Shown here: positions 1 to 45,178 of the stretch, one piece after another
Numbering within the stretch: position 1 is the first letter of the stretch
Layout of the letters: each line of letters starts with the position of its first letter
Assembly: GCF_000143415.4 (NCBI RefSeq)
Contig: NW_003314297.1
Span: 1,031,430 to 1,095,429, forward strand
From: Selaginella moellendorffii
Taxonomy: Eukaryota; Plantae; Lycopodiophyta
Length of the DNA: 64,000 bases
Direction: 5' to 3'
The notes under the pieces: generated by a model
Told to the model about the DNA's origin: nothing
Seen by the model: the letters and a program-made list of their open reading frames with translations, nothing else
The model's database searches: none
Program-made: the position numbers and the translations under genes

Positions 1-1070
1 ATGAACTTCTGCATTTGTTTCTCCATCTCAGCCCGCTTCTTTGCCAGTGCTGCGACATCTCCAGGATCGAACACGGTGCCAGAACCTTTCGTCCTTGTTC
101 CCGTCCATGAAACTGCTCTGGAACCCCGTCGCGTCAAGATGATAGCAGCACTGGGAGCTCGTTTGCAGCCATTTTCTCGCCTGCTGGATGGTGAGAGTAG
201 CCACCAGTCGAGAAGAGTGGATCATCCTCTGGAGTGGCTGAGAACAGCCTTGGCTGCTCGTCAACTTCATTTGCAGGAAAGGCGACGAGAGGATCCTCCA
301 TCATGACGTTTCCCCGGTTTCCCTTCTGGCCATGCACTGGATCAGCAGCACGAAAGAGTGGATCCACTGCGAGCTTGTTTCCGAATGCAGACTTGTGGCG
401 AGCACCACCGGGAAGAGCAGACGGTGGCAGTCGCCTTGGTGGCCTCAGGACCTCGCGAATTCGGGGATCAGCAGCCGCCTTCTTCCTACCGGCATTCAAC
501 TGCAAAGATGGTCGAGGCAATACTTTGGTCAGGGGAATATTAATGAGGTGCTCCTGCTGGCTGTTGCTGCTGCCGCTGTTGCCACTGCCAGGCTGATGGC
601 CATACTCCACGAAGATGTCGTCGTGCACCTTGTTCCTTCTCCGCTTCAAGAGTATCCAGACTCCAGTGACGATGGCTACCAGTGCGAGCAGGAGCATAAC
701 GATGCCTGCCACGAGCACACCAGGTGATGCCACGAATGCAGCTGCTGCTGAAGATGGTGCTGACGGCGCAGTAGGCGGAGAGGTGCCCAAGCCAAGGGGC
801 CTTGTTATGGTCGAAGGTGGTGGCGATGGCGGCCCGGCCCTCCTTGGTCCCAGGTTACAGTGTCGGCCTTGTTGGGCGGCGAAGAAGAAGGTGGCGGCCT
901 TGTAGCAGCTCCATCATCAGCTCGTCGATGTCCATGGTGCCTCTTTGGCTCAGCTGCTGGATGTTCCTTGGTGGGCGGAGAGCTCGGGGGTGGATGTCCA
1001 GCTCCATGATGCTCAGGAGAACTTGGGCTTTCTGTGCCTCTTGGCTAGTGCCGGTGGATATACGAAGAAG
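1..1070 (-). pseudogene. Pro-rich single-pass membrane protein, copy 1 (N-terminal part deleted, frameshifted, runs off window start)
   Basis: ORFs 134..790 and 28..270 contain the TM segment FVASPGVLVAGIVMLLLALVAIVTGVWILLKRRR and the cytoplasmic DPLF motifs of the intact copies; no MARKIST start. Confidence 0.7.
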
Positions 1071-1223
1071 TCGCAGTATTTCAACTCAAGCTTGCTTGCT
1101 TACCATTGTGCTCAAGTTTGCTTGCTTACTTCCCCTTTTTTAGGGCATTAAAGTGTCTGAAATCCCTTTTCGTACAAATAGAAGAATAGTATATTCTTAA
1201 AATCTATAAGATCTGAGAACTTG

Positions 1224-1392
1224 AAATCTGGGCCGTCTATTGGACAGTCATTCATGTACAATCTAGACCGTGCATTTAAAACACTCTGGACCGTTTATTT
1301 ATATACAATCTGAGCCGCCCACGGTGTAAAATCTGGGCTGTCGTATTAATTAAATCAAAGCCGTCGATCTAACATGATCTGAACCGTCCCAT
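1224..1392. promoter_or_regulatory. Phased array of ATCTRRRCCGT-type (MSA-like) motifs in the divergent promoter
   Basis: Motif cores at 1233, 1268, 1291, 1315, 1338, 1361, 1384 (spacing 35, 23, 24, 23, 23, 23); also present at ~7173-7305, 11837-11995, 20935-21070, 34654-34780, 44558-44685. Confidence 0.55.
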
Positions 1393-1687
1393 ATTTAACT
1401 GATGATATTGCAATGCCATGTGTTGCTTTCAAACACTACTTAGGATTGTTTTCATCTTTTCGAGCTAAACTCCATGGCTTTCTCTATCTGCAAGCTTGTA
1501 GTACGAACTTGTAAAGTTTTAGCAACGTGGAATGGCGATTTTGTGGAACTTAATTCCATTTGAAGGGTTGGAGAGATTTATGAGTATTATAGAAAGAGAA
1601 GAAATTTTCAAACACAGAACCAAAATAGATAACGACTAAGCAATACCGTCCCACAACAACTCTCTAGCATTGTGTGCTGGCTCGAGC

Positions 1688-1695
1688 TATAAATA
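1688..1695 (+). promoter_or_regulatory. TATA box of secreted peptide gene
   Basis: GCTATAAATA 80 nt upstream of the ATG; conserved in front of essentially every peptide paralogue, followed by a pyrimidine-rich ATCAAAYCACTTCTCTC Inr-like tract. Confidence 0.7.
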
Positions 1696-1767
1696 CAAGC
1701 CCCTCCCACCTCACAAATCAAACCACTTCTCTCTAATATAACAAGCTTACTTCTCTAGCAGCAAATC

Positions 1768-2883: not shown

Positions 2884-4250
2884 CATGCATCGATTTGCGT
2901 CAAGGCGCCAGGCTCCACGCGCTCGTCCTTGGGAGCAGCCACCAGCAATCCAACAGGTGCCTCGCAAATCTTCTCATCCAACTCTATGGAAGGTGCGAGC
3001 GCGCGGATCGAGCATGGCAGGTGTTTATCAGCATCCACGAGCCCAACAGATTCTCCTGGAACTTGCTGCTTGGCGCTTATGCCCAAAGTGGGTATCTTGA
3101 GAAAGAAAAAGAACTGTTTGATCAGATGCCACAAAGGGATTGTTGCTTGGATGATTTTTATGACGGCTCGTGCAAACCGTGGAAACTTTGAGGAATGCCG
3201 AGCATTGTTTGATCAGGTTCCAGAATGGGATGTAGTTTTCTGGAACTCTCTATTTACAGTATATGCCCATAACGGGCATATGGATCAAGCAAGCCAGTTC
3301 TTTGATGGAATGCTAGAACACAACAGAGTTTCTGTTTGATGCCATACCACAGAAGAACGTTGCATCGTGGTCGACAATATCACAGCACTGGCCGAGAGAA
3401 ACCAGCTCGAAGAAGCTCGCATTCTCTTCGATCGACCTCCCCGACGACGTGGTGTGGACTAACATGATCTTGGCCTATTCCAACCACGGCCACCTCGAAG
3501 AAGCCATGAAGATGTCCACAGTGCGATTTCGTCGCTTAGACGGCAATGGTGGCGGCAATTGCTTTGCACGGGGGCTTGATCGATGCCAGAGTCTTGTTCG
3601 ACCAAATGCCACAGCACGATAGCATCGCGTGAAACACGCTTAGATCCAGAGCAATTGCCCTCGTCCAAGCGCGGGAGCTGAGAGCAACAGCGAGCTGGAT
3701 TGCCGCGAGCGCTCAAAGGGGGAATCTCTTGCAGGCCGGGAAGATCTTCTCCACGTTGCCTGATCAGAGCATTGTGTCGTGGAACGCGATGATCCATGGC
3801 TGCGCACCGAATGGCCATGAGCGAAAATCCGCTGAGTTTTTGGCAGCATGGAGCTTCCCACCGTGATTGCAAGTCAGGAGAATCGCCTGGAAACTTATCT
3901 CGTTCCTCGCCTCGCCCTCCATCGCCGTGTGGCACTCGACTACTTTCGATCTATGGTGGTCTAGTACAGCATTTCTCCAAATGTGATTCACTTCCAGGCG
4001 ATGGCAGATGTGCTGGACGAGCCGGGCTGGTTGCCGAGGCCGAAGGTCTGCTGCTGGTGATGCCCTTCCAGCCGCATTTCATCGCGTGGAAGAGCTTGAT
4101 CAGCGTTTGCAAAGTTCATGGTAGCGAAGAACATCGATGCTGCAGCTCGTGCCGCAGAGAAACTCTTGGAGATGGAACCAGGGGACTCGGCGCTGTACGT
4201 GCTCATGTCGAATCTGCAAAAGCAGGATTCCAGAGAAAGCTTGCCTTCCA
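2884..4250 (+). pseudogene. PLS-class PPR (E-type) pseudogene
   Basis: Fragments in different frames: SWNLLLGAYAQSGYLEKEKELFDQMPQRD, FWNSLFTVYAHNGH, and E domain GRAGLVAEAEGLLLVMPFQPHFIAWKSLISVCKVHG..AARAAEKLLEMEPGDSALYVLMSNL. Confidence 0.85.
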
Positions 4251-4494
4251 ACGTTCATGGGTGGCCTTGCAACAGCTCGGTTTTTCAAGATCTGGGACGC
4301 ACCCAAGGAAGAAGAGGAAAAGTAAGAAACATAAACACAAAATTTGACCAACCTGCTAACTGATGAACAGCAAATTCCGTCACTAGCTTGTGCACAAGCG
4401 TAACTTTAAGAAGATTTAATTAGTAACAGAAAAGTAATTATAAAATCCTATCACTTTCATTGATGTTCTCCCATGCTGATCTCTTTCTGGTCAT

Positions 4495-5345: not shown

Positions 5346-6966
5346 TCACTGTTCTTATGTTTTGTCTCTTGCAGTGCCTGGCATCTATACAACTTGACTT
5401 CGAAGAAACGTACCTCGTCAAGTTCCCTGTCTCTCTCAGAGGTGGAAGAATTCACCAGGATACAGAAGGGCTCGTACCTCGTCGGCGTTTTCACCTGTCA
5501 AGAGAAGCATGCCCCGGAGCAGATGGCTCCACCTCCAAATCACTTTTGACCCGCTTGGGATCATTGACTGTCACCTTCCCGACGAGGTTCTCGTCGCTCG
5601 TGATCTCGGGGCTGTTCTCCACATCGCGCTTCCTGATCGATTCAGCTTCATCAGTCCATATTGTCAGCTCAAGTGCAGAGATTACTAACCTGTGGGAAAA
5701 AGGCCGGATGCAGGGCTCCATCATGATGAACTTCTGCATTTGTTTCTCCATCTCAGCCCGCTTCTTTGCCAGTGTAGCGACATCTCCAGAATCGAACGCG
5801 GTGCCAGAACGATCCGCCACCTTTCCATGAAACTGCTCTGGAACCCGGTCGCGTCGAGATGATAGGCGCACTGGGAGCTCGTTTGCAGCCATTTTCTCGC
5901 CTGCTGGATGATGAGAGTAGCCACCAGTCGAGAAGAGTGGATCATCCTCCGGAGTGGCTGAGAACAGCCTTCGCTGCTCGTCAACTTCATACGCAGGAAA
6001 GACGACGAGAGGATCCTCCATCGTGACGTTTTCCCGGCTTCCCTGCTGGCCATGCACTGGATCAGCAGCACGAAAGAGTGGATCGTTTTCGGATGCAGAC
6101 TTGTGGCGAGCACCAGCGGGAAGAGCAGACGGTGGCAGCCGCCTTGGTGGCCTCAGGACCTCGCGAATTCGGGAGCAGCCGCCTTCTTCCTGCCAGCATT
6201 CAGCTGCGATGATGGTCGAGGCTCCACTTGGTGCTCCCATTGGTTGCTGCTGCTGCCGCTGTTGCCACCGCTAGGCTGATGGCCATACTCCACCAGGATG
6301 TCATCGTGGTGGATGTCGCCGTGCACCTTGTTTCTTCTCCTCTTCAAGAGTATCCAGACTCCAGTGACGATGGCTACCAGTGCGAGCAGGAGCATAACGA
6401 TGCCTGCAACGAGCACACCAGGTGATGCCACGAATGCTGCTGCTGCTGCTGCTGAAGATGGTGCTGACGACGCAGTAGGCGGAGAGGTGTCCAAGCCAAG
6501 GGGCCTTGGTTGCCACGTTATGGTCGAAGGTGGTGGCGATGACGGCCCGGCCCTCCTTGGTCGCTAGGTTACAGTGTCGGCCTTGTTGGGCGGCGAAGAA
6601 GAAGGTGGCGGCCCTGTAGCAGCTTCATCACCAGTGCGTCGATGTCCATGCTCTTTGGCTCGGCTGCTGGATGTTCCTTGGTGGGCGGAGAGCTCGGTGG
6701 TGGATGTCCAGCTCCATGATGCTCGGGAGACCTCGGTGGTGCCGGAGAGCTCGGTGGTGGATGTACAGCTCGAGGTGGCTTTGTTGGTGAGCGTGTCCCT
6801 CTGTGGGCTTTGGTGGTGAATGACTGTACCTCTTGGCTGGCGCCGGTGGAGACCTCTTTGGGGGTGGAGATGAAGTTGTCCGCGCCCTCTTTGGCGATGG
6901 TTTGGGCGGCGGCATCCTCCTCGCGTGCTCCCGGTGAGGCGGCGGGGGCGGTGGTGTGCGAGCCAT
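5346..6966 (-). pseudogene. Pro-rich single-pass membrane protein, copy 2 (frameshifts and stop)
   Basis: Split over ORFs 6628..6966, 6153..6494 and 5491..6240, collinear with intact copies. Confidence 0.8.
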
Positions 6967-7512: not shown

Positions 7513-7710
7513 ATGGAGAACAAGGCTTTCTTCGTGTTGTTTTTGGCGCTCGCCATCTTTGTGATGATGCTGGCCATGGGCGTGGACGTGGGAGGACTCG
7601 CAAAGGCTGCTGCCCAGCGCTGCCAGTCGGGGTGGTATTGGTATGACAACGGTTGCCACCGTTGCCAGAGGGGTTGGAGCTGGCGCAACAATCGCTGCTC
7701 GCGCAACTGA
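7513..7710 (+). CDS. Secreted Cys/Trp/Arg-rich peptide precursor, 65 aa (family A, copy 2)
   Basis: Protein identical to 1768..1965; differs by synonymous changes. Confidence 0.85.
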   Translation: MENKAFFVLFLALAIFVMMLAMGVDVGGLAKAAAQRCQSGWYWYDNGCHRCQRGWSWRNNRCSRN

Positions 7711-8026
7711 AACCTCTCGTTTCATGGGGTAAGCCCAAGTTAAGAATCAGCATCATAATTGCCTTTGATTTTATCGTTCTGCAGTGCCAAGGGTCTGGAA
7801 ACAAGAATAAAGACAATGATAACGTGTTTTCTGTATCGTGCGATGTTGCATAGTATTGCATGAGTTCCAGCAATAAAATATAAATTGTCCAAGCCTTGAT
7901 ATAAAATGTCTGAATCTGTCCTTGGTCCTTCTCCTCTCTTCTCCAAATCCCACGACTTCCAATCGATTGTTCCAATGATCGGCAAGCAATAAGACTTGAT
8001 TGGAGCATCAAACGCAGGCCCAGGCA

Positions 8027-8165
8027 TGGAGGTCGGGGGCATCACCAAGGCGCAGCCCTTGGTACTGGAATAGATTTCGCTGCGTGCAATGCAATTGGTA
8101 CGGGTATGATAACAGCTGTCATCGAGGGTGGCGCTGGAATGGCAGCGCTGCATCTGCTGAAGAAT
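8027..8165 (+). pseudogene. Peptide paralogue family B remnant
   Basis: WYWNRFRCVQCNWYGYDNSCHRGWRWNGS within ORF 8000..8263; no signal peptide. Confidence 0.6.
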
Positions 8166-9082
8166 TGCCAAAGTTTACGAGCCTCGGCCTCGAAGAAGCA
8201 CGGGAGCGATTCTCGAATCATGAAAAGTTGGTTGACAGCCTGGATGAGATATATGTAGAATAAGAGTGAACCAAGGTGTTTTGGAGTCTATTCGTGTTTG
8301 ATGCCCTGGGCCTGAGACTGTCAATGATAAATATGGTGCGTTTTCTGCTAAGTCAGTGTAACGTTCGCAATGTATGGACTTTTAATATATAGGAACGTCA
8401 TATATTCAGTCAAAAAACTTGAACCAGAATGACAGGATAATTAGAACATGACAAATAAAATAAAAAGAAAGCCAACCGAGTCAATCTATCTGGGCTCAAA
8501 ATTATATTATATAATTTTAACTAAAAATATATATATATTTTTTGTCAGTTGTGGACACTCTGCCATCTTAGTCTCGACGTGGAACCAGATGGAAATATGA
8601 CGTGGTAGTGGAGACAAGTTTTTCAACGATCTGATCTCTTTCCCAAGACAAAGTCTAGCAATTATATACACCAACCACGTATATAAAACACAATCGAAAA
8701 TGAAATGACATACACATCTTCTAAAGATCGTCAAGATCCAATTATTTATTTGGATTTTTGTTCTTTTCAGTGGCAGTGAAATCTATAGAAATGGCGCATG
8801 GTGATGCACGAGTTCATATATTATATAAACTGTGAAAAAACTAAAATTCTGTCTTACTCTGGATTCACAGCTTCATTTCGTGTGTTGTTCTATGTCCCAG
8901 CATTATAGAAAAGAAAGGAATTGACAAACACGGAATGACTTCTTCGAATAACTTTCAAAGGACAAAGTTCTCAGGAGGCGCCACTCAAGCATTGTATGCT
9001 GCCTCGAGCTATAAATACGAGCGACCTCACAGATCAAATCACTTCTCTCGAATATACTAGAGTTTGTTGAACTCTTAGGTTC

Positions 9083-9250
9083 ATGGAGAACAAGGCTTGC
9101 CTGGTGTTGTTTTCGGTTCTCGCCATGTTGCTGATGCTGGCCATGGGAGTGGACGTGGGAGGAATCTCAAGCGCACTGCAGCTAGCTCCTCTAAGGGATT
9201 GTTTTGCAAATTTTGGCTACACCATGTTCTTTGAAAGTGCCTTTAAATAG
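9083..9250 (+). pseudogene. Peptide paralogue family C, mature region lost
   Basis: MENKACLVLFSVLAMLLMLAMGVDVGGI then unrelated sequence to TAG at 9250; TATA at ~9010. Confidence 0.6.
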
Positions 9251-10714
9251 GAGCGATATGAAATAAAGTCAGTGAAATGACCACCGTTTAGTGCGCACTT
9301 CTTTGCGACAAATCAAAGCTCTATCTTCAGTCTCCAGGAAAACGTCGCTAAGATGACAGGAATCACTACTTTCCGATTCAAGCCTCTAGAACAGACTGGA
9401 CGATCTAGAGCAGCGCACACCGTAGATCTAATAACAGAAACTAATTAATTTTAAATGGACAATACCTCCCAATGCTGAGCTGAGTGTGATCGGTCGGGCA
9501 TGCTGGATTGCCCAAGAGATTGTCAAGAGCCTACCAGTGAGAAAAGACGATGTAGCATTTACCACTTTTCTTGCAGGTATATAATCCTACTATAGAGTTC
9601 TTGTCTTCCATCTTGACCTAGGTTCTATCAAACTTTGAGTTTGTAAAAGCTAGAAGAGAGATAAAGATACATTTTCGGCCTGTTCAATTTTGACATGGTC
9701 AATTAACACTCAATAGTGCAAGATTGCAAGATTGGAATGAGCGTGTAGGTTGAATACCTCGATGCAATCTGTAAGCTCCAATTACCACAATCTTCATCAA
9801 AGATTGAAGAGAGATGCAGCAGGTACAACAGAAATGGATGATTCAAGGATAGCTAGAATATATCATCATAGCACAATAGACATGATTAAGGGACATGCCA
9901 CACCTGGATAAATGAGGTGGCACTATTGCAACCTAAGATCATGTCATAGAGAGCATATATACTCAAAAAAGATGTCTTACCTAGACATGCTCAACACCAT
10001 CTTATTTCATTCTCTCTCCACTTAGTTGATAGTGACTTTGCATTTATTTGCGACTTTCTTGATTCAGGGCTATGAGACACCTGCCCATTTGCACCTGCAA
10101 ATCTGCAGACTTAAATTTAATTGACTTAAAAAAGTTCATGGTTTTTTCATGATCTAGCATATAATTTAATTTCATATTGATTATGTAGTTGATAAATTGA
10201 CAGTGAATATTTTCTATGCAAATTGTTAATATGCTGTATAGTTAGAAAATTATCTTGACAAAGAGGTTCACTAATTGATTTATTCTTTCCCATAATCTAT
10301 ATATGCTCATTATAAATTTAATTTGAGGTGAAATCCTACTAGATCATATAAATCACTCAATTTTGAAAGCTTTTGAGAAAATAATGACTTTCCTCCATGG
10401 ATCTAACAAAAAATCCCATTCTAGGCTATTTATAAAAAGATTTGATCAAAAACTTGAAAGCCAACCCCACTTGTTAAAACTTTGACCTAGATTACAAATG
10501 TTGGCTTCTTTTTCGGTGGGAATTCTTCGTTCTCCAGTCTGTCCATCTCTTCCAAAACTAGAGTATCAAAAACACTCACCCTCTTCTCATCCTACTCTTC
10601 ATTTTCGGCTTCATGCTCTGAGTTTTTTTCGAAAGCTCTAGTTCTTCTTCTTGTTGTGGAGGAGACTCTTCCACCAACCAAGATCCCAAAGCCTACCTTA
10701 TGTTGTAATTGTAG

Positions 10715-11685
10715 GTCGAGATGATAGGTGCATTGGGCGCTCGTTTGCAGCCATTCTCTCGCCTGCTGGATGATGAGAGTAGCCACCAGTCGAGAAGAGT
10801 GGATCATCCTCCGGATCAGACGAGTGGCTGAGAACAGCCTTGGCTGCTCGTCAACTTCATTTGCGCAAAAGACGAGGAGAGGATCCTCCATCATGACGTT
10901 TCCCCGGCTTTTCTGCTGGCCATGCACTGGATCAGCATCACGAAAGAGTGGATCGTTTCCGGATGCAGACTTGTGGCGAGCAAGAGCATACGGTGGCAAC
11001 CGCCTTGGTGGCCTCAGGAGCTCGCGAATTCGGGGATCAGCAGCCTCCTTCTTCCTGCCGGCATTCAACTACGATGATGGTCGAGGCTCCACTTTGGTAA
11101 TGAGGTGCTCCCGCTGGTTCCTGCTGCTGCCGCTGTTGCCACCGCTAGGCTGATGGCCATACTCCACCAGGATGATGTCGCCGTGCACCTTGTTCCTTCT
11201 CCGCTTCAAGTGTATCCAGACTCCAGTAACGATGGCTACCAGTGCGAGCAGGAGCATAACGATGCCGGCCGCGAGCACACCAGGTGATGCCACGAATGCT
11301 GCTGCTGCTGCTGCTGAAGATGGTGCTGACGGCACAGTGGGCCTTGGTTTCCACGTTATGGTCGAAGGTGGTGGCGATGGCGGCCTTGGGTTCCACGTTA
11401 TGCTTGAAGGTGGTGGCGTTATGCTCGAAGGTGGTGGCGATGACGGCCCGGCCCTCCTTGGTCGCCAGGTTACAGTGTCGGCCTTGTTGGGCTGCGAAGA
11501 AGAAGGTGGCGGCCCTGTACCAGCTCGTCGATGTCCATGGTGCCTCTTTGGCTCTGCTGCTGGGTTCCTTGGTGGGCGGAGAGCTCGGTGGTGCTCAGAG
11601 CTCGGCGGTGGATGTCCAGCTCCATGATCCTCACGTGCTCCCGGTGAGGCGGCGGGGGTGGGGGTGTGGAGATTTTGTGAGCCAT
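10715..11685 (-). pseudogene. Pro-rich single-pass membrane protein, copy 3 (frameshifted, 3' end replaced)
   Basis: ORFs 11470..11685, 11069..11698, 10592..11068; homology stops at ~10715. Confidence 0.75.
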
Positions 11686-12321: not shown

Positions 12322-12519
12322 ATGGAGAACAAGGCTTTCTTCGTGTTGTTTTTGGCGCTCGCCATATTTGTCATGATGCTGGCCATGGGCGTGGACGTGG
12401 GAGGACTCGCAAAGGCTGCTGCTCAGCGCTGCCAGTCGGGGTGGTATTGGTATGTCAACAGTTGCCACTGTTGCCAGAGGGGTTGGAGCTGGCGCAACAA
12501 TCGCTGGTGGCGCAACTGA
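12322..12519 (+). CDS. Secreted Cys/Trp/Arg-rich peptide precursor, 65 aa (family A, copy 3, Cys-shift variant)
   Basis: Intact ORF; mature QRCQSGWYWYVNSCHCCQRGWSWRNNRWWRN. Confidence 0.75.
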   Translation: MENKAFFVLFLALAIFVMMLAMGVDVGGLAKAAAQRCQSGWYWYVNSCHCCQRGWSWRNNRWWRN

Positions 12520-28748: not shown

Positions 28749-28788
28749 CCTTGGCAGGCGAGGAGCGACCGAGACAACAACGACGAAG

Positions 28789-28848: not shown

Positions 28849-28916
28849 CGGTGTCCTTGATAAAGCCCCACTGTAAATAACCCCGCGTCCTTAAATTTCA
28901 AAACAAGACATTTGCG

Positions 28917-32753: not shown

Positions 32754-34459
32754 TCACTTGTTCTTATGTTTTGTCTCTTGCAGTGCCTGCAATCAAAGAG
32801 TAGCATCTATACAGATTGCCTTTGAAGAAACGTACCTCGTCAAGTTCCCTGTCTCTCTCAGAGGTGGAAGAATTCACCAGGATACAGAAAGGCTCGTACC
32901 TGGTCGGCGTTTTCACCTGTCAGAGAAGCGTGCCCCGGAGCAGATGGCTCCACCTCCAAATCACTCTTGACCCGCTTGGGATCATTGGCTGTCAACTTCC
33001 GGACGAGGTTCTCGTCGCTCGTGATCTCGGGGCTGTTCTCCACATCACGCTTCCTGATTGATTCAGCTTCATCAGTTCATATTGTCAGCTCAAGTGCAGA
33101 GACTACTAACCTGTGGGAAAAAGGCCGGATGCGGGGCTCCATCATGATGAACTTCTGCATTTGTTTCTCTATCTCAGCCCGCTTCTTTGCCAGTGCTGCG
33201 ACATCTCCAGGATCGAACACGGTGCCAGAACGATCCGCCACCTTTCGTCCTTGTTCCCGTCCATGAAACTGCTCTGGAACCCGGTCGCGTCGAGATGATA
33301 GGCGCACTGGGAGCTCGTTTGCAGCCATTTTCTCGCCTGCTGGATGATGAGAGTAGCCACCAGACGAGAAGAGTGGATCATCCTCCGGAGTGGCTGAGAA
33401 CAGCCTTCGCTGCTCGTCAACTTCATACGCAGGAAAGAGGACGAGAGGATCCTCCATCATGACGTTTCCCCGGCTTCCTTGCTGGCCATGCACTGGATCA
33501 GCAGCACGAAAGAGTGGATCGTTTCCGGATGCAGACTTGTGGCGAGCATCAGCGGGAAGAGCAGACGGTGGCAGCCGCCTTGGTGGTCTCAGGAGCTCGC
33601 GAATTAGGGGGTCAGCAGCCGCCTTATTCCTGCCGGCATTCAACTGCGATGATGGTCGAGGCTCCACTTTGGTAATGAGGTGCTCCCGCTGGTTGCTGCT
33701 GCTGCCGCTGTTGCCACCGCTAGGCTGATGGCCATCCTCCACCAGGATGTCGTCGTGGTGGATGTCGCCGTGCACCTTGTTCCTTCTCCTCTTCAAGAGT
33801 ATCCAGACTCCAGTGACGATAGCTACCAGTGCGAGCAGGAGCATAACGATGCCTGCCGCGAGCACACCAGGTGATGCCACGAATGCAGCTGCAGCTGCTG
33901 CTGCTGAAGATGGTGCTGACGACGCCGTAGGCGGAGAGGTGTCCAAGCCAAGGGGCCTTGGTTGCCACGTTATGGTCGAAGGTGGTGGTGATGGCGGCCT
34001 TGGGTTCCACGTTATGGTCGAAGGTGGTGGCGATGGCGGCCTTGGGTTCCACATTATGCTCGAAGGTGGTGGCGATGACGGCCCGGCCCTCCTTGGTCGC
34101 CAGGTTACAGTGTCGGCCTTGTTGGGCGGCGAAGAAGAAGGTGACGGCCCTGTAGCAGCTCCATCACCAGCTCGTCGATGTCCATGGTGCCTCTTTGGCT
34201 CTGCTGCTGGATGTTCCTTGGTGGGCGGAGAGCTCGGTGGTGGATGTCCAGCTCCATGATGCTCAGGAGAACTCGGTGGTGGCTTTGCTGGTGAGTGATG
34301 TCCATCTGTGGGCTTTGGTGGACTGTGCCTCTTGGTTGGCGCCGGCGGAGACCTCTTTGGTGGCGGAGATGAAGTTGGCGATGGTTTGGGCGGCGGCGTC
34401 CTCCTCGCGTGCTCCCGGTGAGGCGGCGTGGGCGGTGGCGTGGAGATTTTGCGAGCCAT
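32754..34459 (-). CDS. Pro-rich single-pass membrane protein, copy 6; predicted intact 497 aa; exons 34459-33111, 33053-32972, 32916-32900, 32848-32836, 32786-32754
   Basis: Four GT-AG introns of 57, 55, 51 and 49 nt give an open frame ending DPKRVKTPTRELDEALQETKHKNK*; the apparent stop at 33077 falls inside intron 1. Confidence 0.7.
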
Positions 34460-35004
34460 AGTCAGAGATCAAGCTTACCAGAGAAAGTCGCAGTATTTCA
34501 GCTCAAGCTCGCTTGCTTACCAGAGGAAACTCGCGCTTGCTTACTTCCCCCTTTTTTAGGGAATTTAAGTGTCTGAAAGCTAAGTACTTATGATGTGTAC
34601 GGTAAACGAATGGTATTTTCGTACAAATAGAAGAATAGTAGTCATTCTTGTACAATCTAGACCGTGCATTTAAAATTTTCTGGACCGTTCCTTTATATAC
34701 AATCTACACTGTGTAAAATCTTGGCTGTCGTATTAATTAATCGAAGCCGTCGATCTAACATGATCTCAACCGTCCCATATTCAACTGAAAGTTTTAGCGA
34801 ACTTAGCGATCCTCATTTGAAGGGTTGGAGAGATATTATAGAAACGAGAAGAAATTCTCAAACACGGAACCAAATTAGATAAGGACTAAGCAATGCCGTC
34901 CCACAACAACTCTCTAGCATTGTGTGCTGGCTCGAGCTATAAATATGAGCCCCTCCTGCCTCACAGATCAAACCACTTCTCTCTAATAGAACAAGCAGCA
35001 AAGC

Positions 35005-35202
35005 ATGGAGAACAAGGCTTTCTTCGTGTTGTTTTTGGCACTCGCCATATTTGTGATGATGCTGGCCATGGGCGTGGACGTGGGAGGAATCGCAAAGGCT
35101 GCTGCCCAGCGCTGCCAGTCGGGGTGGTATTGGTATGACAACAGTTGCCACCGTTGCCAGAGGGGTTGGAGCTGGCGCAACAATCGCTGCTGGCGCAACT
35201 GA
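35005..35202 (+). CDS. Secreted Cys/Trp/Arg-rich peptide precursor, 65 aa (family A, copy 5)
   Basis: Intact ORF with TATA at ~34938. Confidence 0.85.
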   Translation: MENKAFFVLFLALAIFVMMLAMGVDVGGIAKAAAQRCQSGWYWYDNSCHRCQRGWSWRNNRCWRN

Positions 35203-35422
35203 AACCTCCAGTTTCACGGGGTAAGCCCAAGCTAAGAATCAGCATCGTAATTGCCTTTGATTTCATCGTTCTGCAGTGCCAAGGGTCTGGAAACAAGAAT
35301 AAAGACACTGATGACGTGTTTTCTGTATCGTGCGATGCTGCATGGCATTGCATGAGTTCCAGCAATAAAATATAAATTGTCCAAGCCTTGATATAAAATG
35401 TCTGAATCTGCCCTTGCTCCTT

Positions 35423-35522
35423 NNNNNNNNNNNNNNNNNNNNNNNNNNNNNNNNNNNNNNNNNNNNNNNNNNNNNNNNNNNNNNNNNNNNNNNNNNNNNN
35501 NNNNNNNNNNNNNNNNNNNNNN
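35423..35522. other. Assembly gap (100 N)
   Basis: N run; the duplicated unit has only ~8 nt (CCTCCAAG) at the equivalent position. Confidence 0.99.
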
Positions 35523-35604
35523 TCCCTCGACTTCCAGTCGATTGCTCCAATGATCGGCAAGCAATAAGACTCGATTGGAGCATCAAAACCAGGCCCAGGC
35601 ACAC

Positions 35605-35740
35605 CTAGCGGTGGGAGTGGAGGTCGGGAGGATCATCAAGGCGATGGCGCATCGCTGCTTCGGAGGGATGGATTTCGCTGCGCGCAATGCAATTGGTACG
35701 GGTATGGCGTGGCGCTGGAATGGCAGCCGCGGCCTCCACT
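35605..35740 (+). pseudogene. Peptide paralogue family B remnant
   Basis: Homologous to 19971..20136 with deletions. Confidence 0.55.
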
Positions 35741-36459
35741 GAAGAATTGCCTCGAAGAACCACGGGAACGAATCTCGAATCATGAAAAGTGATATATATA
35801 TAGAATAAGAGTGAACGAAGATGTTTTGGAGTCTATTGACGTGTTTAGTGCCCTGAGACTGTCAAGCGTTTTCTGCAAAGTTGTGTGTAACGTATGGACT
35901 TTTAATATATAGGAACTTTTTTCATATAATCTAGACTCAAATTTATATTTTATATAATATTAAATATATTAAATTGGAAAAGCAACAAGATGGAAATATG
36001 ACGCAGTAGTGGAGACAAATTTGTCCAAGACAAAGTCTAGCAATTACATACCCCAACCACGTATAACCTCTCTCGATCGAAAATGAAATGAAACACACAT
36101 TTCTGTTCTAAAGATCGTTAAGATCCAACTATTTATTTGGATTTTTGTTCTTCCCAGTGGCAGTGAAATCTAGCGCGTGGTGATGCATGAGTTCATATAT
36201 TATATAAACTGTGAAAAAACTAAAAATGTTGTCTTTACTCATCTGGATTCACAGCTTCACTTCCTGTGTTGTTCTATGTCCCAGCATTACAGAAGAGAAA
36301 AGGAATTGACAAACACGGAACGACTTCCTCGACTAACTTTTAAAGGACAAAGAGATGCCGTCCCAAGAGGGGCCACTCAAGCATTGTATGCTGCCTCGAG
36401 CTATAAAAATACAAGCGGCCTCACAGATCAAATCACTTCTCTCGAATATACTAGAGTTT

Positions 36460-36565
36460 CATAGGCTTGCTTGGTGTTGTTTTCGGTTCTCGCCATGTTG
36501 CAAAGGCGCTCCCTGCCACCGATGCCCTCGAGGACGGCGCTGGTATGGCGGCTCTGTGATCGTAA
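36460..36565 (+). pseudogene. Peptide paralogue family C remnant (start lost)
   Basis: ACLVLFSVLAML and CHRCPRGRRWYGG fragments; equivalent copy at ~46340-46445. Confidence 0.55.
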
Positions 36566-36786
36566 GTTTCCTCTCAGGGATTGTTTTGCAAAGTTTGGCT
36601 TGTTCTTTGAAAGCGCCTTTAAATAGGAGAGAGATGAAGAAAAAGTGGCATTGAAAAATTAGAGCAGACTACCACGCCTGTAAGCCTGTACTACCACGCA
36701 GACGTACTGATTCAAGCCTCTAGAACGCGGCAGTCAGTGCTGCCCGGTCCTGCTGGTCGGACAGTAGTCCCCCTGCCTCACCACGG

Positions 36787-38310
36787 GTGGCCGATCTAGA
36801 GCAGCGCGCATTGTCGCTCGACGACGACTACGCGCAACTTCTCACAGCTTGCATCGAATTGCGTCAACGCGCCACGCGCTCATCCTTGGGAGCACCCACC
36901 ACTAATCCAGCAGGTACCTCGCAAATCTTCTCATCCAACTCTATGAAAGGTGCTAGCGCGCGGATCGAGCATTGGCAGGTGTTTATCAGCATCCACGAGC
37001 CCAATAGATTCTCTAGGAACTTGCTGCTTGGCCCTTATGCCCAAAGTGGGTATCTTGAGGAAGCAAAAGAGCCGTTTGATCAGATGCCACAAAGGGATGT
37101 TTCTGCATGGATGATTTTTATGACGGCCTGTGAAAACCGTGGAAACTTGGAGGAATGCCGAGCATTGTTTGATCAGGTTCCAGAATGGGATGTAGTTTTC
37201 TGGAACTCTCTAATTACAGTATATGCTTATAACGGGCATATGGATCAAGGGTCTTTGATGGAATGCTAGAACACAACATAGTTTCTTGGGCTGTTATGGT
37301 TACTGGGTATGCAAGAAAAGGTCTTGTTAACGACGCGCTACGTTTTTTTATGGGAATCCCCGAAACCAACGAGCTGGGATGAACTGTTCCTGTCCCCCAG
37401 CTTGAGCATAATGAAACAGCCAAGGAGCTTTTCAGTAAAATGTGCCACAGAAGAACGTTGCATCGTGGTCGACAATATCACAACACTGGCCGAGAGAAAC
37501 CAGCTCGAAGAAGCTCGCATTTTCTTCGATCGACCTCCCCGACGACGTGGTGTGGACTGACATGATCTTGGCCTACTCCAACCACGGCCACCTCGAAGAA
37601 GCCATGAAGATGTTTGCACGGATGCCACAGCGCGATCACGTCGCTTAGACGGCAATGGTGGCGTCAATTGCTTTGCACGGGTGCCATCTTGTTCGACCAA
37701 ATGCCACAGCATGATAGCGTCGCGTGAAACACGCTGGGAGCTTACATCCAGAGCAATTGCCCTCGTCCAGCGCGGGAGCTCTTCGCGGCCATGCTGGTGA
37801 GAGACACAGCGAGCTGGATTGCCGCGAGCACTCAAAGGGGGAATCTCTTGCAGGCTGGGAACATCTTCTCCATTGTGCCGCGGAACGCGATGATCCATGG
37901 CTGCGCACAGAATGGCCACGCTGAGTTTTTGACAGCATGGCGATGGAGGGCGAGACGAGAAACGAGATAAGTTTCCAGGCGATTCTCCTGACTTGCGGAA
38001 GCTCCGAGTGGCACTCAACTACTTTCGATCTATGGTGGCCGAGTACAGCATTTCTCCATGTGATTCACTTCCAGGCGATGGCAGTGCTGGGACGAGCCGG
38101 GCTGGTTGCCGAGGCCGAAGGTCTGCTGCTGGTGATGCCCTTCCAGCCGCATTTCCTCGCGTGGAAGAGCTTGATCAGCGGTTGCAAAGTTCATGGCAGC
38201 GGCAAGAACATCGATGCTGCAGCTCGTGCCGCAGAGAAACTCTTGGAGATGGAACCATGGGACTCGGCGCTCTACGTGCTCATGTCGAATTTGCAAAAGC
38301 AGGATGCTTG
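36787..38310 (+). pseudogene. PLS-class PPR (E-type) pseudogene
   Basis: Frameshifted PPR motifs and E domain VLGRAGLVAEAEGLL..AAEKLLEMEPWDSALYVLMSNL. Confidence 0.85.
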
Positions 38311-38719
38311 CCTTCCAAGGTTCATGCGTGGCCTTCGAACAGCTCGAACTGGGACAGCACACTGCACCCAAGGAAGAAGAGGGAAAAGCAAGAAACATAA
38401 ACACAAAATTTGACCAACCTGATGTGATCTAACTGAACAGCAAATTCGTTCACATGAATTTGCTTGTGCACCAGCGAAGAGGTTTGGGAAGAATTGTGAG
38501 CAATTTCGGTTAACTTTCTAGCATCTATTGCAGGACTTGACTGTTCTAAGGAGGGATCTAAAGGAGGTTGACAATTACAGCGACAACTTCTGGAATAATC
38601 CAAGGAATGGGATTCTTGTAGGGTTCTTTGAAGATGACTCAGAGAAAAACTTTCTTAACCCCCAAAGATTTTGCGTGATTGAAGAGCTAAAATTAAAAAA
38701 TTAGGGTTCTTGATGGCTA

Positions 38720-39140
38720 TGGGCGTGGAGGAGCACGTCTCCTCCTCAACCTGGGCAATGCCCTGGACGACGCCGTCCTCCGCGAGCTCCCGATCGCTGC
38801 GAGCACTGGACGATGATCCACAGGTGCGCGTGGTGCTGCTCTCGGGGAATGGCTCCAATTTCTGCTCGGGTATCGACACCAACATCCTCAGCACCAAATC
38901 CTCTTCTTCCTCTTCCTCGGCCCATGGCGATGGCGATGGCGCTCGCGGCCGCCGAGAGGGAGTCTTGGAACCACCTGATGTAGGCGCCGAATCTCTCGCC
39001 CGAGATTTGCCGCAAGCCAGTCATCGCGATGATCTATGGCGCGTGCATTGGCGCCGGGATCGATGTCATCACGGCCTGCGACGTGAGGTACTGCACTAGA
39101 GATTCACTCTTCTCCGTCAAGGAGGTGGATCTAGGACTCA
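38720..39140 (+). pseudogene. DCI1: Delta3,5-delta2,4-dienoyl-CoA isomerase (crotonase family) 5' fragment
   Basis: LDDDPQVRVVLLSGNGSNFCSGID and ICRKPVIAMIYGACIGAGIDVITACDVRYC..FSVKEVDLG; frameshifted and truncated. Confidence 0.8.
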
Positions 39141-40221
39141 TTGCCGAGAACAGCCTCCTTGCCTCCTCCAAATCTCCAGCTTGGGAATACGCTGCTAAAA
39201 TCACGTTCCATGAAATGGTATCTCGCTCTTTCATGGAATAGAACGTTGTCTTTGCACGAGAGATATTTCTATCGCCGACATACGCCGCTAGCATGGTATT
39301 CCACGTCATTGTGTCCCTTGCAAAAAAGCTCTCCACAGCATCAAAATACCTGGCCACGGCATATCCTGAAATCAAAGTTGTCCACGACACAATGTCCCAT
39401 TCTGGGCACAAATCAAACCGAGACTTGGCTCCCTCTAAGTCTCCAGCGTTAATAAATGCCGAAATCACCGCATTGTAGAAGACCACATCTTTCTCGTGCA
39501 TGGTTTGGAGCAAACGTATACATTCTACCAAATGCCCTCTTTTGCCATATGCCTGAAGCATCACCGTAAACGAGACAAGATCCCACTCGGGCATGGAATC
39601 AAAGACCCGCTTTGCTTCGGTGAGATCACCTTTCAGAGAAAACGCTTCAAGCATGGTAGTGCAGGCTAGCATGTTTCTTTCGGGCATTTTGGAGAAGAGG
39701 TCTTTAGCTCTAGCTATTAGACCCTTTTCGCAAAACGCGGCCACCATGGTTGTCCATGTAACGAGCGTCGCTTCTGGGATCCATGCAAACATACTCTCGG
39801 CGCTGGACAGATCACCCAAGTTTGCAAATCCAGATATCATGGAATTAAAGACTACAACGTTCCATCTGGGCATAAGATCAAACAACCTCTTTCCACTGCT
39901 CAAATCGCCCTTCTTTACAAACGCCTGGAGAAGTGACGCCCAGGAAACAATGTCCCTGTCCGGCATCGTATCAAACAGCTGTTTTGCCTTACGCAAATGC
40001 CCAGCATTAGCATAAGCTGCAACCAGCGTATTCCAAGTCACTCGATCTCGCAATGGCAAGACTCCAAACAGCTCCTCCGCTTGGGCAATACCTCCATTGC
40101 GGACGTAGCCCGAGAGCAGGATATTCCAAGAGTGCTGGTTGGGACACTCGAGCGTTTGAAAGGCAGAAAGGGCATCTTGGAGGCTGCCACACCTGGCATA
40201 TGCTTTGACGATTAGATTCAC
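39034..40221 (-). pseudogene. PPR protein, long open repeat tract, 3'-truncated and with 5' frameshift
   Basis: About eleven ~31-aa S-type repeats (MPDRDIVSW, MPERNMLAC, MKERDTISW); ORF starts at GTG; the likely ATG region (MDHEVITLIGR) is in another frame; the last ~35 aa are antisense DCI1. Confidence 0.75.
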
Positions 40222-40372
40222 GAGCTGGACATGGCGGTGGAGTTAACCCTCTTTTCACTTGCGAGATGGTAGAAGCACGCCCGATCAAAGTGATAACCTC
40301 ATGGTCCATGTCCAAAACATTGCACCTAAGTTCTTAGATTATACCGTGACGAACAAAAGAATTTTTGGATTT

Positions 40373-40870
40373 CACACCTGGATAGACAAAATATGTTCAA
40401 AACAAAACTTTCGGTCACTTCGAAAAAATCTACGATACCTTCGGTTCCATGCTCCTGGATTTTTTTGCAAGCTGAAGTTCTCTTGGAGAATCCATGGGCC
40501 GAGCTCGTAGAAGCAACCGATCAAGCTGGAGCAACCGGGTCCGCCGTTGAGCCACACCATAATCGGTGAGATTTCCAGCTCGGTGTCTGGCTTGCTCGCT
40601 TCGTAGTAAACGTAAAAGAGGCGAGACTCGCTCGACTCGTCAATGGGGAGATAGCCGGAGTCGGTTGGCAAAGCCTCGTCTGGGAATTCATACTCGGCAG
40701 CGTGGATTTCATTGGTTATGGAAGTCTGGACCTGAAAAACCACAGAGAAAAGTTGGCAAATGCAGGTGAGAAATTTCTATCTTATGATTTCTTCTCTCTG
40801 TTTTTTTTTTTTTTTCATGAGCTAAACCTGGTCGCAGGCCATAATACTTCGATCACAAGCAACTTCCATC
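40373..40870 (-). pseudogene. Serine carboxypeptidase-like 5' fragment (exons 1-2 only)
   Basis: Copy of 30213..30722 including WLNGGPGCSS; the rest of the gene is absent. Confidence 0.85.
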
Positions 40871-42109
40871 AACAGCCAGCTTTTGCTTGAAGGAAGAAGA
40901 AAAGAAAAAAGGAGAAGAAATTCACTAACGAAGGATAAAGCAAACCAGGAACTAAAGGAACGATCCCAATGAGAGAGGAGATTCTCAAATAAGGCAAAGA
41001 TAGAAGAAATCAGCGGCCATACGTACGATCCTGCGAGCTTTGGTTCGAACAGTGGTTCGAAAGCAAGAAGAGGGACCCCGATTCGGCGTTGGCAGCCTGA
41101 TCTCTCGAAACGGGACGTTGAATCTGGGACTGCTCGCAGCGCTGCTGCCGCTGGCGAGCTGCATTGCGACGCGATCGCCCGCGCCGGGGGCAAGCGACGT
41201 GTGCCCCGTCGATCGAAGCCCCGGAAGAACCCTAAATTCTTTATTTGAAATCGAATCTTTACTGGTTCTTTGCTTAAGTAAATGATTTCTTCCATGAAGG
41301 AAACATCCTTCATCCCTGCTGATGATAATCAAGCCACAAAGTAGTTTATAATGTTTGACCTGTGGATTTTTCCACTCTATTTCTGCATTCCATGGCTCTT
41401 TGTGTAAGAGTCCTCTCTAGGTTAAGAGATAGGGTTAGGCTCATTGGATGAGTGCAAGGTATTTGACATTCAGCCTTATCTATTTAAATTTCTATCAGCT
41501 TATAAATATGGTTTGTATTCAAACTAAAAATCACAGAATAGACACTACTTAAATGAATGCTGGAATGGCTTTTAAGTATATTATTATCTAAACATAAAAG
41601 TATGATCTTTAACAGTACTAAAACCAGGAGCTTAATAATAAAACTACAATAAAATTTTAAAGGTTTTGGGAAAACTTTTAGGCAGCAAATGAGAATGAAA
41701 CGACAGTAAAAATTGGTAAAGCTAAAAAAAATTATTAAATACCACGAATAGAGATTACTTCCTGCAAATCTAAGATTAAGGAAACTTTAGGAAGTTATAT
41801 GATAATAATATAACCCAAAAGCTCGAAATAATGGCAATAGAGAGGAGGATAGTCTGCAAATATTTATAACTTTAACAAGATTTAATATCAGAAAATAATT
41901 ATTAATTAATTAATTTTAAACGGGTAATACCTCCCATTGGATGGCTGAAGCATAGACCACTTTCTGGTCCCGTCACGGATCACTACTGCTGCATGATCAA
42001 CCTGTTTGGGTGCTGGATTGCCCAAAAGATTGTCAACAGCCTCCCAGTGAGAAGAGACGATGTAGCATTTACCACTATTCTTGCAGCGTAATATACTCCT
42101 AATGGAATG

Positions 42110-42370
42110 CCACCTAGGATCATGTCATAGAGAGCTCAAAAAAGATGCTGTTGCCTGCGCATGCTCATCGTCCCATCCTTGAACACAGCCACGAATGTCA
42201 AGAACAAACCGGTTGTGATGTTGGTGTTGGCGGAATGTACATCCCTTTGGCTCTTCCTACAATCTGGGAGTCACGCGAGGGAGAACATCATCGATGACAA
42301 ACACTGCATCAAAATGGCCATTCCGCGACCAAAACCACCGTGAAATTTGATTTCAGTTGCATGAGAAAAC
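42110..42370 (-). pseudogene. Dirigent-like protein remnant
   Basis: Duplicate of 32200..32470. Confidence 0.55.
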
Positions 42371-42652
42371 CACCGTACGAATTCTGGTGTTGTCTAATAT
42401 CTATTAGTGCAATAATATTATCACCGACTCAAGAATCGATAGTTTAGATTTCATAAAAACAGAATAAAAATTAACAAAATCAGTTTGTGATCATCCTGGC
42501 TATTGTATATCGATGATCGATGGCTCCTCCTAAACTTTTGTACCCCGATGAAAGGCCAGGAAGACCTTCCTGTGACTTACTCAAGCACATAGAAGGGACT
42601 GAAGAGAAAGCCAGATAAATGACGAGCTTTCGCTCTTCATTCTATTTGTTTT

Positions 42653-44364
42653 TCACTTGTTCTTACGTTTTGTCTCTTGAAGTGCCTGCAATCAAAGAGT
42701 AGCATCTATACAGATTGCCTTTGAAGAAACGTACCTCGTCAAGTTCCCTGTCTCTCTCAGAGGTGGAAGAATTCACCAGGATACAGAAAGGCTCGTACCT
42801 GGTCGGCGTTTTCACCTGTCAGAGAAGCGTGCCCCGGAGCAGATGGCTCCACCTCCAAATCACTCTTGACCCGCTTGGGATCATTGGCTGTCAACTTCCG
42901 GACGAGGTTCTCGTCGCTCGTGATCTCGGGGCTGTTCTCCACATCACGCTTCCTGATCGATTCAGCTTCATCAGTTCATATTGTCAGCTCAAGTGCAGAA
43001 ACTACTAACCTGTGGGAAAAAGGCCGGATGCGGGGCTCCATCATGATGAACTTCTGCATTTGTTTCTCTATCTCAGCCCGCTTCTTTGCCAGTGTTGCGA
43101 CATCTCCAGGATCGAACACGGTGCCAGAACGATCCGCCACCTTTGGTCCTTGTTCCCGTCCATGAAACTGCTCTGGAACCCGGTCGCGTCGAGATGATAG
43201 GCGCACTGGGAGCTCGTTTGCAGCCATTTTCTCGCCTGCTGGATGATGAGAGTAGCCACCAGACGAGAAGAGTGGATCATCCTCCGGAGTGGCTGAGAAC
43301 AGCCTTGGCTGCTCGTCAACTTCATACGCAGGAAAGAGGACGAGAGGATCCTCCATCATGACGTTTCCCCGGCTTCCTTGCTGGCCATGCACTGGATCAG
43401 CAGCACGAAAGAGTGGATCGTTTCCGGATGCAGACTTGTGGCGAGCACCAGCGGGAAGAGCAGACGGTGGCAGCCGCCTTGGTGGCCTCAGGAGCTCGCG
43501 AATTAGGGGGTCAGCAGCCGCCTTCTTCCTGCCGGCATTCAACTGCGATGATGGTCGAGGCTCCACTTTGGTAATGAGGTGCTCCCGCTGGCTGCTGCTG
43601 CTGCCGCTGTTGCCACCGCTAGGCTGATGGCCATCCTCCACCAGGATGTCGTCGTGGTGGATGTCGCCGTGCACCTTGTTCCTTCTCCTCTTCAAGAGTA
43701 TCCAGACTCCAGTGACGATAGCTACCAGTGCGAGCAGGAGCATAACGATGCCTGCCGCGAGCACACCAGGTGATGCCACGAATGCAGCTGCAGCTGCTGC
43801 TGCTGCTGAAGATGGTGCTGACGACGCCGTAGGCGGAGAGGTGTCCAAGCCAAGGGGCCTTGGTTGCCACGTTATGGTCGAAGGTGGTGGTGATGGCGGC
43901 CTTGGGTTCCACGTTATGGTCGAAGGTGGTGGCGATGGCGACCTTGGGTTCCACATTATGCTCGAAGGTGGTGGCGATGACGGCCCGGCCCTCCTTGGTC
44001 GCCAGGTTACAGTGTCGGCCTTGTTGGGCGGCGAAGAAGAAGGTGACGGCCCTGTAGCAGCTCCATCACCAGCTCGTCGATGTCCATGGTGCCTCTTTGG
44101 CTCTGCTGCTGGATGTTCCTTGGTGGGCGGAGAGCTCGGTGGTGGATGTCCAGCTCCATGATGCTCAGGAGAACTCGGTGGTGGCTTTGCTGGTGAGTGA
44201 TGTCCATCTGTGGGCGAATGACTGTGCCTCTTGGTTGGCGCCGGTGGAGACCTCTTTGGTGGCGGAGATGAAGTTGTCGGCGCCCTCTTTGGCGATGGTT
44301 TGGGCGTCCTCGCGTGCTCCCGGTGAGGCGGCGGGGGCGGTGGCGTGGAGATTTTGCGAGCCAT
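42653..44364 (-). CDS. Pro-rich single-pass membrane protein, copy 7; predicted intact 499 aa; exons 44364-43010, 42952-42871, 42815-42799, 42747-42735, 42685-42653
   Basis: Same splice model as copy 6; all splice sites present; ends ELDEALQETKRKNK*. Confidence 0.7.
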
Positions 44365-44980
44365 AGTCAGAGATCAAGCTTACCAGAGAAAGTCGCAGTA
44401 TTTCAGCTCAAGCTCGCTTGCTTACCAGAGGAAACTCGCGCTTGCTTACTTCCCCCTTTTTTAGGGCATTAAAGTGTCTGAAAGCTAAGTACTTATAATG
44501 TGTACGGTAAACGAATGGTATTTTCGTACAAATAGAAGAATAGTAGTCATTCTTGTACAATCTAGACCGTGCATTTAAAATTTTCTGGACCGTTCCTTTA
44601 TATACAATCTACACTGTGTAAAATCTTGGCTGTCATATTAATTAAATCGAAGCCGTCGATCTAACATGATCTCAACCGTCCCATATTCAACTGATGCGAT
44701 TCTGGGCAAAACTTTTTAACACGGCCGAGGGTCTTGTAATATGAACTTGTAAAGTTTTAGCAGGCGAATTTGTGGAACTTAGTGATCCTCATTTGAAGGG
44801 TTGGAGAGATATTATAGAAACGAGAAGAAATTCTCAAACACGGAACCAAATTAGATAAGGACTAAGCAATGCCGTCCCACGACAACTCTCTAGCATTGTG
44901 TGCTGGCTCGAGCTATAAATATGAGCCCCTCCTGCCTCACAGATCAAACCACTTCTCTCTAATAGAACAAGCAGCAAAGC

Positions 44981-45178
44981 ATGGAGAACAAGGCTTTCTT
45001 CGTGTTGTTTTTGGCACTCGCCATATTTGTCATGATGCTGGCCATGGGCGTGGACGTGGGAGGAATCGCAAAGGCTGCTGCGCAGCGCTGCCAGTCGGGG
45101 TGGTATTGGTATGACAACAGTTGCCACCGTTGCCAGAGGGGTTGGAGCTGGCGCAACAATCGCTGCTGGCGCAACTGA
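44981..45178 (+). CDS. Secreted Cys/Trp/Arg-rich peptide precursor, 65 aa (family A, copy 6)
   Basis: Protein identical to 35005..35202; synonymous differences only. Confidence 0.85.
   Translation: MENKAFFVLFLALAIFVMMLAMGVDVGGIAKAAAQRCQSGWYWYDNSCHRCQRGWSWRNNRCWRN

Follow-up and report, generated by a model that had tools for sequence, protein, structure and literature searches.

Why should a gene for a small secreted peptide lie, again and again, head to head with a gene for a proline-rich membrane protein? This question is raised by a stretch of 64,000 nt from Selaginella moellendorffii (GCF_000143415.4, NW_003314297.1:1,031,430-1,095,429, forward strand; the whole stretch is called the window in the following), which holds six such pairs. 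The original prediction for this locus considered a co-regulated ligand/receptor, self-recognition or toxin/protector module under birth-and-death evolution and named simple hitch-hiking on a duplicated block as the main alternative. Our analysis favors the latter, because the linkage goes back to one event, paralogues of the membrane gene at other loci are unlinked and the two genes decay unevenly. Co-amplification of one block, to which we assign a probability of roughly 0.7, best explains the recurring pairs, with the peptide gene as constrained cargo.

Six Divergent Gene Pairs and a Seventh Membrane Gene

Using tblastn and a listing of open reading frames (ORFs) we located six intact 65-codon peptide ORFs in the window, each of them divergent to a gene for a Pro-rich single-pass membrane protein. 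The peptide genes, designated A, occupy 1768-1965 (+; copy I, type 1), 7513-7710 (+; copy II, identical in protein to copy I), 12322-12519 (+; copy III, an open ORF with the exchanges D45V, R50C and C62W), 20455-20652 (-; copy V, type 2, in an inverted unit), 35005-35202 (+; copy VI, type 2) and 44981-45178 (+; copy VII, type 2). The ATGs of the membrane genes are found at ~1067, 6966, 11685, 21280, 34459 and 44364, and the distance between the two start codons is 545-637 bp, with ~700 bp in the first pair. The pairs are therefore present where they had been predicted and all peptide ORFs are open, but the integrity of the peptide genes (six of six) does not extend to their partners, as the membrane copies I, II and III are frame-broken or truncated.

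In detail, membrane copy I (1-1056, -) is pseudogene-like and runs off the start of the window; an ORF at 134-790 encodes its transmembrane (TM) segment and tail, and the N-terminal part (850-1056) lies in a different frame. Copy II (5491-6966, -; annotated as P0006, a 436-aa model) is split into three ORF pieces, and copy III (10592-11698, -; annotated as P0012, 218 aa) has a frameshifted N-terminus and a truncated 3' end. Copy IV (17248-18663, -) has a frameshifted N-terminal half and has lost its TM segment by frameshift. It is the seventh membrane gene, correctly predicted to lack a peptide partner: the homology of the cassette ends ~125 bp upstream of its ATG and is followed by ~1 kb of unrelated DNA and then by the inverted unit. 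These four of the seven copies represent all four units of the left sub-array. Intact are copy V (21280-22836, +; P0001, a 518-aa ORF including an in-frame 57-nt intron), copy VI (~32750-34459, -; exon 1 at 33077-34459, the approximate 3' end taken from homology to copy VII) and copy VII (~42650-44364, -; P0003, 513 aa, three exons). The introns of P0003, ~57 nt and ~113 nt long, have canonical GT donors, and exon 1 ends with AG/GTTAGT. The annotation of this gene is inconsistent, as P0001 reads through the in-frame 57-nt intron, whereas the models P0002 and P0003 have it removed; in copy VII this intron holds a stop codon.

One Ancestral Juxtaposition

Self-alignment of the window revealed a left sub-array of ~5.7-kb units, which start near 1, 5726, 10715 and 17474 and share 83-92% identity, a single inverted unit (19885-23138) and two 10-kb units (30213-40753 and 40373-50635) with 96-99% identity. 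The DNA between the peptide and the membrane gene aligns across the units together with the genes themselves, at 82-99% identity of the units. Furthermore, the two types of the peptide (type 1 with L29, G47 and S63, type 2 with I29, S47 and W63) and the similarity groups of the membrane genes track the same two sub-arrays. Both observations indicate that the six pairs are copies of one ancestral juxtaposition and count as one linkage event. The array is young and tandem and known so far from S. moellendorffii only.

The scaffold GL377572.1 offers a second view on this region. A 12.8-kb locus of this scaffold (L002) aligns to 22775-35422 of the window at 95.9% identity, single-copy housekeeping genes included, which indicates that GL377572.1 carries a sister (haplotype-like) copy. 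The cassette array and the head-to-head arrangement are present there too (loci L002 and L003). In L003 (16891-19463), peptide genes at 17061 (-) and 19269 (+) lie on either side of one short membrane-gene remnant, and a degenerate membrane copy of the same scaffold (P0008) has no peptide gene directly upstream. The cassettes have therefore been rearranged differently on the two scaffolds.

Most likely, the ancestral block consisted of a TATA-driven gene for the secreted peptide, a divergent orphan gene for an extensin-like single-pass membrane protein and PPR gene fragments, and unequal crossing-over amplified it into units of 5.7 kb and 10 kb, one of which became inverted. The head-to-head pairing would then have been multiplied along with the entire block, without repeated selection for pairing.

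Unlinked Paralogues, Separate Promoters and Decaying Partners

Among the rival explanations a functional module survives best, although we consider it unlikely. According to this explanation peptide and membrane protein act as a co-regulated pair, either ligand/receptor-like or wall-sensing, which is held together by a shared divergent promoter and gains in dosage by amplification. The head-to-head geometry with at most 700 bp between the ATGs is in line with this, and so are the three intact pairs in the younger sub-array and the persistence of the arrangement on the second scaffold. In addition, the positive-inside rule predicts an ectodomain facing the apoplast, where the peptide would be found. 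On the other hand, all pairs stem from one event, and the linkage is not a general property of the membrane-gene family. Three dispersed and divergent paralogues exist, at L001 (P0010), L004 (P0014) and L005 (P0013/15/16), and none of these loci contains a peptide homologue within +/-10 kb. At L001 and L004 there is also no small ORF for a Cys-rich secreted protein within ~5 kb of the gene, and a ribosomal S30 gene occupies the divergent upstream position at L005. The expectation that the divergent linkage holds at other loci is thereby contradicted from the side of the membrane gene. Synteny of the PPR genes in the array with those at the dispersed loci was also considered as a trace of shared block ancestry and rejected, as the similarity is generic (21-45%).

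The partners also do not share their fate within the array. The peptide genes next to the broken membrane copies I and II have stayed intact and encode the same protein, and one membrane copy persists without a peptide gene. Even the three intact membrane copies show a ratio of non-synonymous to synonymous changes (pN/pS) of 0.4-1.0, ectodomain (0.45-0.87) and tail alike. This shows that they evolve almost neutrally and that the membrane gene of the array is redundant and decaying. A module is furthermore hard to reconcile with the lack of a kinase or any other signalling domain and with an ectodomain that is predicted to be disordered.

The intergenic region itself (44365-44980 in unit VII) contains two separate core promoters: on the strand of the membrane gene TATATAAAG precedes the ATG by 240 nt, and TATAAATA precedes the peptide ATG by 67 nt. 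Each gene keeps its own conserved TATA box. The boxes are ~240-310 bp apart, a distance that could be counted in favor of a module, but the indel-rich and poorly conserved stretch that separates them (44711-44800) shows the lowest conservation in the whole cassette.

The Peptide Gene as Constrained Cargo

The second rival explanation concerns the peptide gene: the 65-codon ORF could be non-functional, by chance or as a recently dead gene, and open only because the duplicates are young. It is unannotated and absent from a collection of 5.8 billion proteins and from gene-call records, no sequencing run recorded as RNA contains it, and the low divergence among the copies means that few disabling mutations are expected. 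We nevertheless regard this as quite unlikely, and the comparison of nine copies, six from the window and three from the sister scaffold, provides the reasons. All nine comprise 65 codons and are intact. The coding sequence (CDS) contains no gap event, compared to 21 in 250 alignment columns upstream and 20 downstream, and its pairwise identity of 96.9% (90.4% upstream, 93.5% downstream) is the highest in the cassette. The pN/pS of the peptide is 0.39 (about 0.3-0.4), based on ~9 synonymous and 11 non-synonymous events, whereas ~1:4 would be expected under neutrality (binomial p = 0.009, or 0.06 if a generous transition bias is allowed).

At the protein level the nine copies share at least 92% identity, and the framework of Cys and Trp residues is retained in eight of them. 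The exception is the copy at 12322 with three private non-synonymous changes, including the loss of the fourth Cys, which looks to be starting decay. A comparison of unit VI with the corresponding unit of GL377572.1 revealed an identical mature peptide; the sole change, M18T, is located in the signal peptide.

The expression signals are kept as well. Besides a canonical signal peptide, all nine copies have a TATA box at -59 to -80 from the ATG (eight read TATAAATA and one reads TATAAAAA), the start context CAAA(G/T)CATGG and an AATAAA ~96 nt past the stop codon, and in eight of nine a second AATAAA follows ~162 nt past the stop (96 and 162 nt in copy VII). In all copies a conserved GGTAAG is positioned directly after the stop codon with a CAG ~55 nt further on (45179-45260), which could represent a short intron in the 3'-untranslated region of a size typical for Selaginella. 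Sequencing runs from eight or more studies, tentatively taken as RNA, contain 15-53% of the sampled words of 44900-45330 and weakly suggest that the peptide gene is transcribed.

A useful contrast within the same units is provided by two decayed paralogues, B and C, which tblastn detected downstream of the peptide gene A in each unit. In the first unit, B (2248-2493, +) has no signal peptide and C (2572-2760, +) lacks the first Cys loop. Further B sequences lie at 8000-8263, 12809-13069, 19974-20132 (-) and 45459-45689 and further C sequences at 9083-9250 and 13900-14058. The B paralogues have lost the hydrophobic core of the signal peptide and contain stops; in C the signal peptide is kept, the first loop is lost and the tails are variable. 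Like the flanks of A, they have many indels, and judged by their sequences B and C illustrate what neutral decay would look like beside an intact A, whose CDS is free of indels. Taken together, a gene that is always intact and without indels, with pN/pS below 1 and with promoter and poly(A) signals kept, is shown to be the constrained cargo of the block. Birth-and-death evolution of an amplified cassette, as originally proposed, is clear from the broken membrane copies, the B and C paralogues and the intact peptide A.

Both assembly gaps of the window are located downstream of a peptide A gene and outside the coding sequences of all pairs, and therefore do not affect these findings. In unit III the gap at 13351-13572 (222 N) separates the pseudogenes B and C, and the sequences on its two sides align in collinear order to 8511 and 8717 of the sister unit II, corresponding to ~205 bp. 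In unit VI the gap at 35423-35522 (100 N) begins 220 nt past the stop codon of the peptide A gene and has flanks that align to 45398 and 45407 of unit VII, corresponding to ~8 bp.

Remaining Explanations and Points Against Co-amplification

We consider it very unlikely that peptide and membrane protein form a true functional pair under one common divergent promoter, in which the peptide could dock, for instance, on the glycosylated Pro-rich arm of the membrane protein in the context of wall integrity or self-protection. If this were the case, it would be a peptide/receptor-like system without a kinase, so far from S. moellendorffii alone. A self-recognition or toxin/protector locus in the style of SCR/SRK or PrsS/PrpS has in its favor the tight linkage of a secreted Cys-containing peptide gene to a membrane gene in a structurally dynamic region, but it is most improbable, as a mature peptide that is identical on two scaffolds and nine copies with at least 92% identity are the opposite of S-locus hyperpolymorphism, the partner genes are often broken and a folded receptor domain is absent from the predicted structure. 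The module favored in the original prediction therefore finds no support in any of its three forms, given one linkage event, unlinked paralogues, broken partners, an identical mature peptide and a predicted disordered ectodomain.

Nevertheless, several points weigh against co-amplification of a constrained peptide gene as we describe it. The selection signal of the peptide is built on ~20 substitutions and becomes borderline once transition bias is allowed, and gene conversion could homogenise the peptide CDS. Whether the linkage predates the array was judged from the side of the membrane gene. The short distance between the two TATA boxes makes shared regulation possible, although not indicated, and three intact pairs persist. 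Finally, the defensive role that we propose below for the peptide is deduced from its composition and from a single-sequence model.

Features and Likely Role of the Peptide

The precursor starts with MENK, followed by a hydrophobic core of 18 residues and GVDVGG, and would release one peptide. The predicted mature part of 37-42 residues has a net charge of +5/+6 and contains four Cys, 4-5 Trp and 6 Arg. It consists of two units, RCQSGWYWYDNSC and RCQRGWSWRNNRC, with 8 of 13 residues in common (R-C-Q-x-G-W-x-W-x-x-N-x-C), and the resulting Cys frame is C-x10-C-x2-C-x10-C. AlphaFold2 (AF2), run on the single sequence, modelled the signal sequence as a helix and the mature part as two beta-hairpins (41-44/47-50 and 55-58/61-64) with a predicted local distance difference test score (pLDDT) of ~80. 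In this model the Trp residues alternate along the strands and would line one face of each hairpin, and the two hairpins would be held by two disulfides.

Relatives of the peptide were found neither by protein homology search nor by sequence in Pfam, Atlas and PDB. A Foldseek search with the model gave EGF/furin-like hairpin modules at a best E-value of 1.5, which is not significant, and our literature search found no paper on such a Selaginella peptide. We assume that the product is most likely an apoplastic defence peptide, which according to composition and model would bind membranes or carbohydrate; a signalling role seems less likely.

An Orphan Membrane Protein with an Extensin-Like Arm

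The membrane protein begins without a hydrophobic stretch and has an N-terminal arm of 181-202 aa with 28-30% Pro, 3-4 SPPP and 7-8 SPP motifs. The arm contains 2-3 copies of an ITW-containing Pro-rich repeat (e.g. PSPPPSTITWNPRP), the number of which varies among the copies. It is followed by an Ala run, one TM helix, the motif KRRRNK and a tail of ~290 aa up to the end of the model, which carries the conserved short motifs PPRRLPPSA, DPLF and VFDPGD and one predicted helix. The position of KRRRNK after the TM helix points to a topology with the N-terminus outside and the C-terminus inside, so that the arm would face the wall, where it is probably glycosylated at hydroxyproline. An AF2 model based on an alignment of eight sequences has a mean pLDDT of 45 and is confident only for the TM helix (199-236, pLDDT 86-92) and for a cytoplasmic helix (419-441). 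The protein is thus predicted to be almost wholly disordered, its ectodomain being a disordered Pro-rich chain and not a folded receptor domain. We infer that it would act as a tether or scaffold between wall and membrane and not as a ligand-binding receptor.

The protein had been described as kinase-less and, like the peptide, as belonging to no recognisable family, and both descriptions are correct. There is no kinase or other Pfam domain (only sub-threshold hits of the TM type), a profile search of PDB gave 0 hits and Atlas scored 0.79 without a match. The 518-aa ORF at 21280-22836 matches proteins of S. moellendorffii only, for example SELMODRAFT_417975 and 407769, which are encoded on scaffolds of 1.75 and 3.9 Mb; we found no paper naming the SELMODRAFT identifiers. 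A profile search among 1.84 billion representative proteins likewise produced 7 hits, all from S. moellendorffii. These include three divergent singletons that share the architecture and the conserved short motifs PPRRLPPSA, VFDPGD and AEKRxEMEK, which indicates that the membrane-protein family is older than the array. The automatically assigned names 'PERK9', 'formin-like 14' and 'BTB/POZ 7' were rejected as low-complexity artefacts.

Neighbouring Features

Fragmented pieces of PPR genes occur in every amplified unit (2886-4377, 14334-16089, 36787-38447 and 46692-48321), and the 10-kb units each contain an open 395-aa PPR ORF (39034-40221, -, and 48914-50101, -; Pfam PPR, E = 1.6e-74). The region of ~23200-32000 between the inverted unit V and unit VI is single-copy, and the annotation of the sister scaffold lists Peptidase_S10, Cpn60/TCP-1 and ribosomal protein S2 there. 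Beyond the array, two direct repeats of 1.87 kb (51166-53032 and 57028-58906) are 99.4% identical and 5.9 kb apart, and a partial third one (63059-63952) shows 92% identity. Each full repeat contains ~54 tandem copies of CTCGGACTCCAT. From its sequence, the direct-repeat arrangement at 51-64 kb looks like a long terminal repeat (LTR) retrotransposon. The GC skew is strongly negative across 52-58 kb.

Significance and Comparison with Known Systems

Two orphan families join the known genes of S. moellendorffii, a key early vascular plant: unannotated secreted peptides rich in Cys, Trp and Arg, whose four-Cys scaffold had not been described before, and PERK-like membrane proteins without kinase. 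The tandem array is also a clean case of birth-and-death evolution, as one member of the cassette has been preserved next to a decaying neighbour, and it calls for caution, since gene pairs that were multiplied by a segmental duplication do not testify independently to functional coupling. Should the peptide turn out to be antimicrobial or to bind carbohydrate, it would represent a new compact double-hairpin scaffold. The finding opens no long-standing question.

The locus shares with the recognition loci SCR/SRK of Brassica and PrsS/PrpS of Papaver a secreted peptide gene that is physically linked to the gene of a membrane protein. In contrast to them, it has neither allelic hypervariability nor a folded receptor or kinase, the partners decay independently and one block duplication explains the linkage. 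[quoted passage not shown] However, PERKs are defined by their kinase and none was found in S. moellendorffii (PMC4769139), and here the C-terminal kinase domain is replaced by a disordered orphan cytoplasmic tail. Compared to extensins, SPPP motifs are present (3-4), a signal peptide and YxY are absent, and the protein is at most similar to 'other chimeric EXT'.

With the lineage-specific tandem arrays of plant cysteine-rich peptides (CRPs) and defensin-like peptides (reviewed in PMC4695807 and PMC7476358), the peptide gene has in common the signal peptide, the short, cationic and Cys-stabilised mature part, the clustered birth-and-death evolution with pseudogenes beside intact copies and the tendency to be missed by annotation. 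It differs from these families by only four Cys in the frame C-x10-C-x2-C-x10-C, by the duplicated GWxW unit and by the absence of any relative in our searches. Among antimicrobial peptides (AMPs), Ib-AMP1 of Impatiens balsamina has 20 residues, a charge of +5 and four Cys, and the Ib-AMPs show the motif CCX8CX3C, fold into a loop that lacks beta-structure and are processed from a polyprotein of six peptides (PMC10136942). The Selaginella peptide is similarly short, strongly basic and Arg/Trp-rich with two putative disulfides, but it has two tandem hairpin units and a single-peptide precursor, and neither the motif nor the precursor of the Ib-AMPs applies to it. In composition and architecture the closest likeness is, in our view, to these four-Cys Ib-AMPs and to the disulfide-cyclised beta-hairpin AMPs (PMC13001179), the latter also short, strongly basic and Arg/Trp-rich: the Selaginella peptide combines a signal peptide, a charge of +5/+6, four Cys and two predicted hairpins, and may be antimicrobial.

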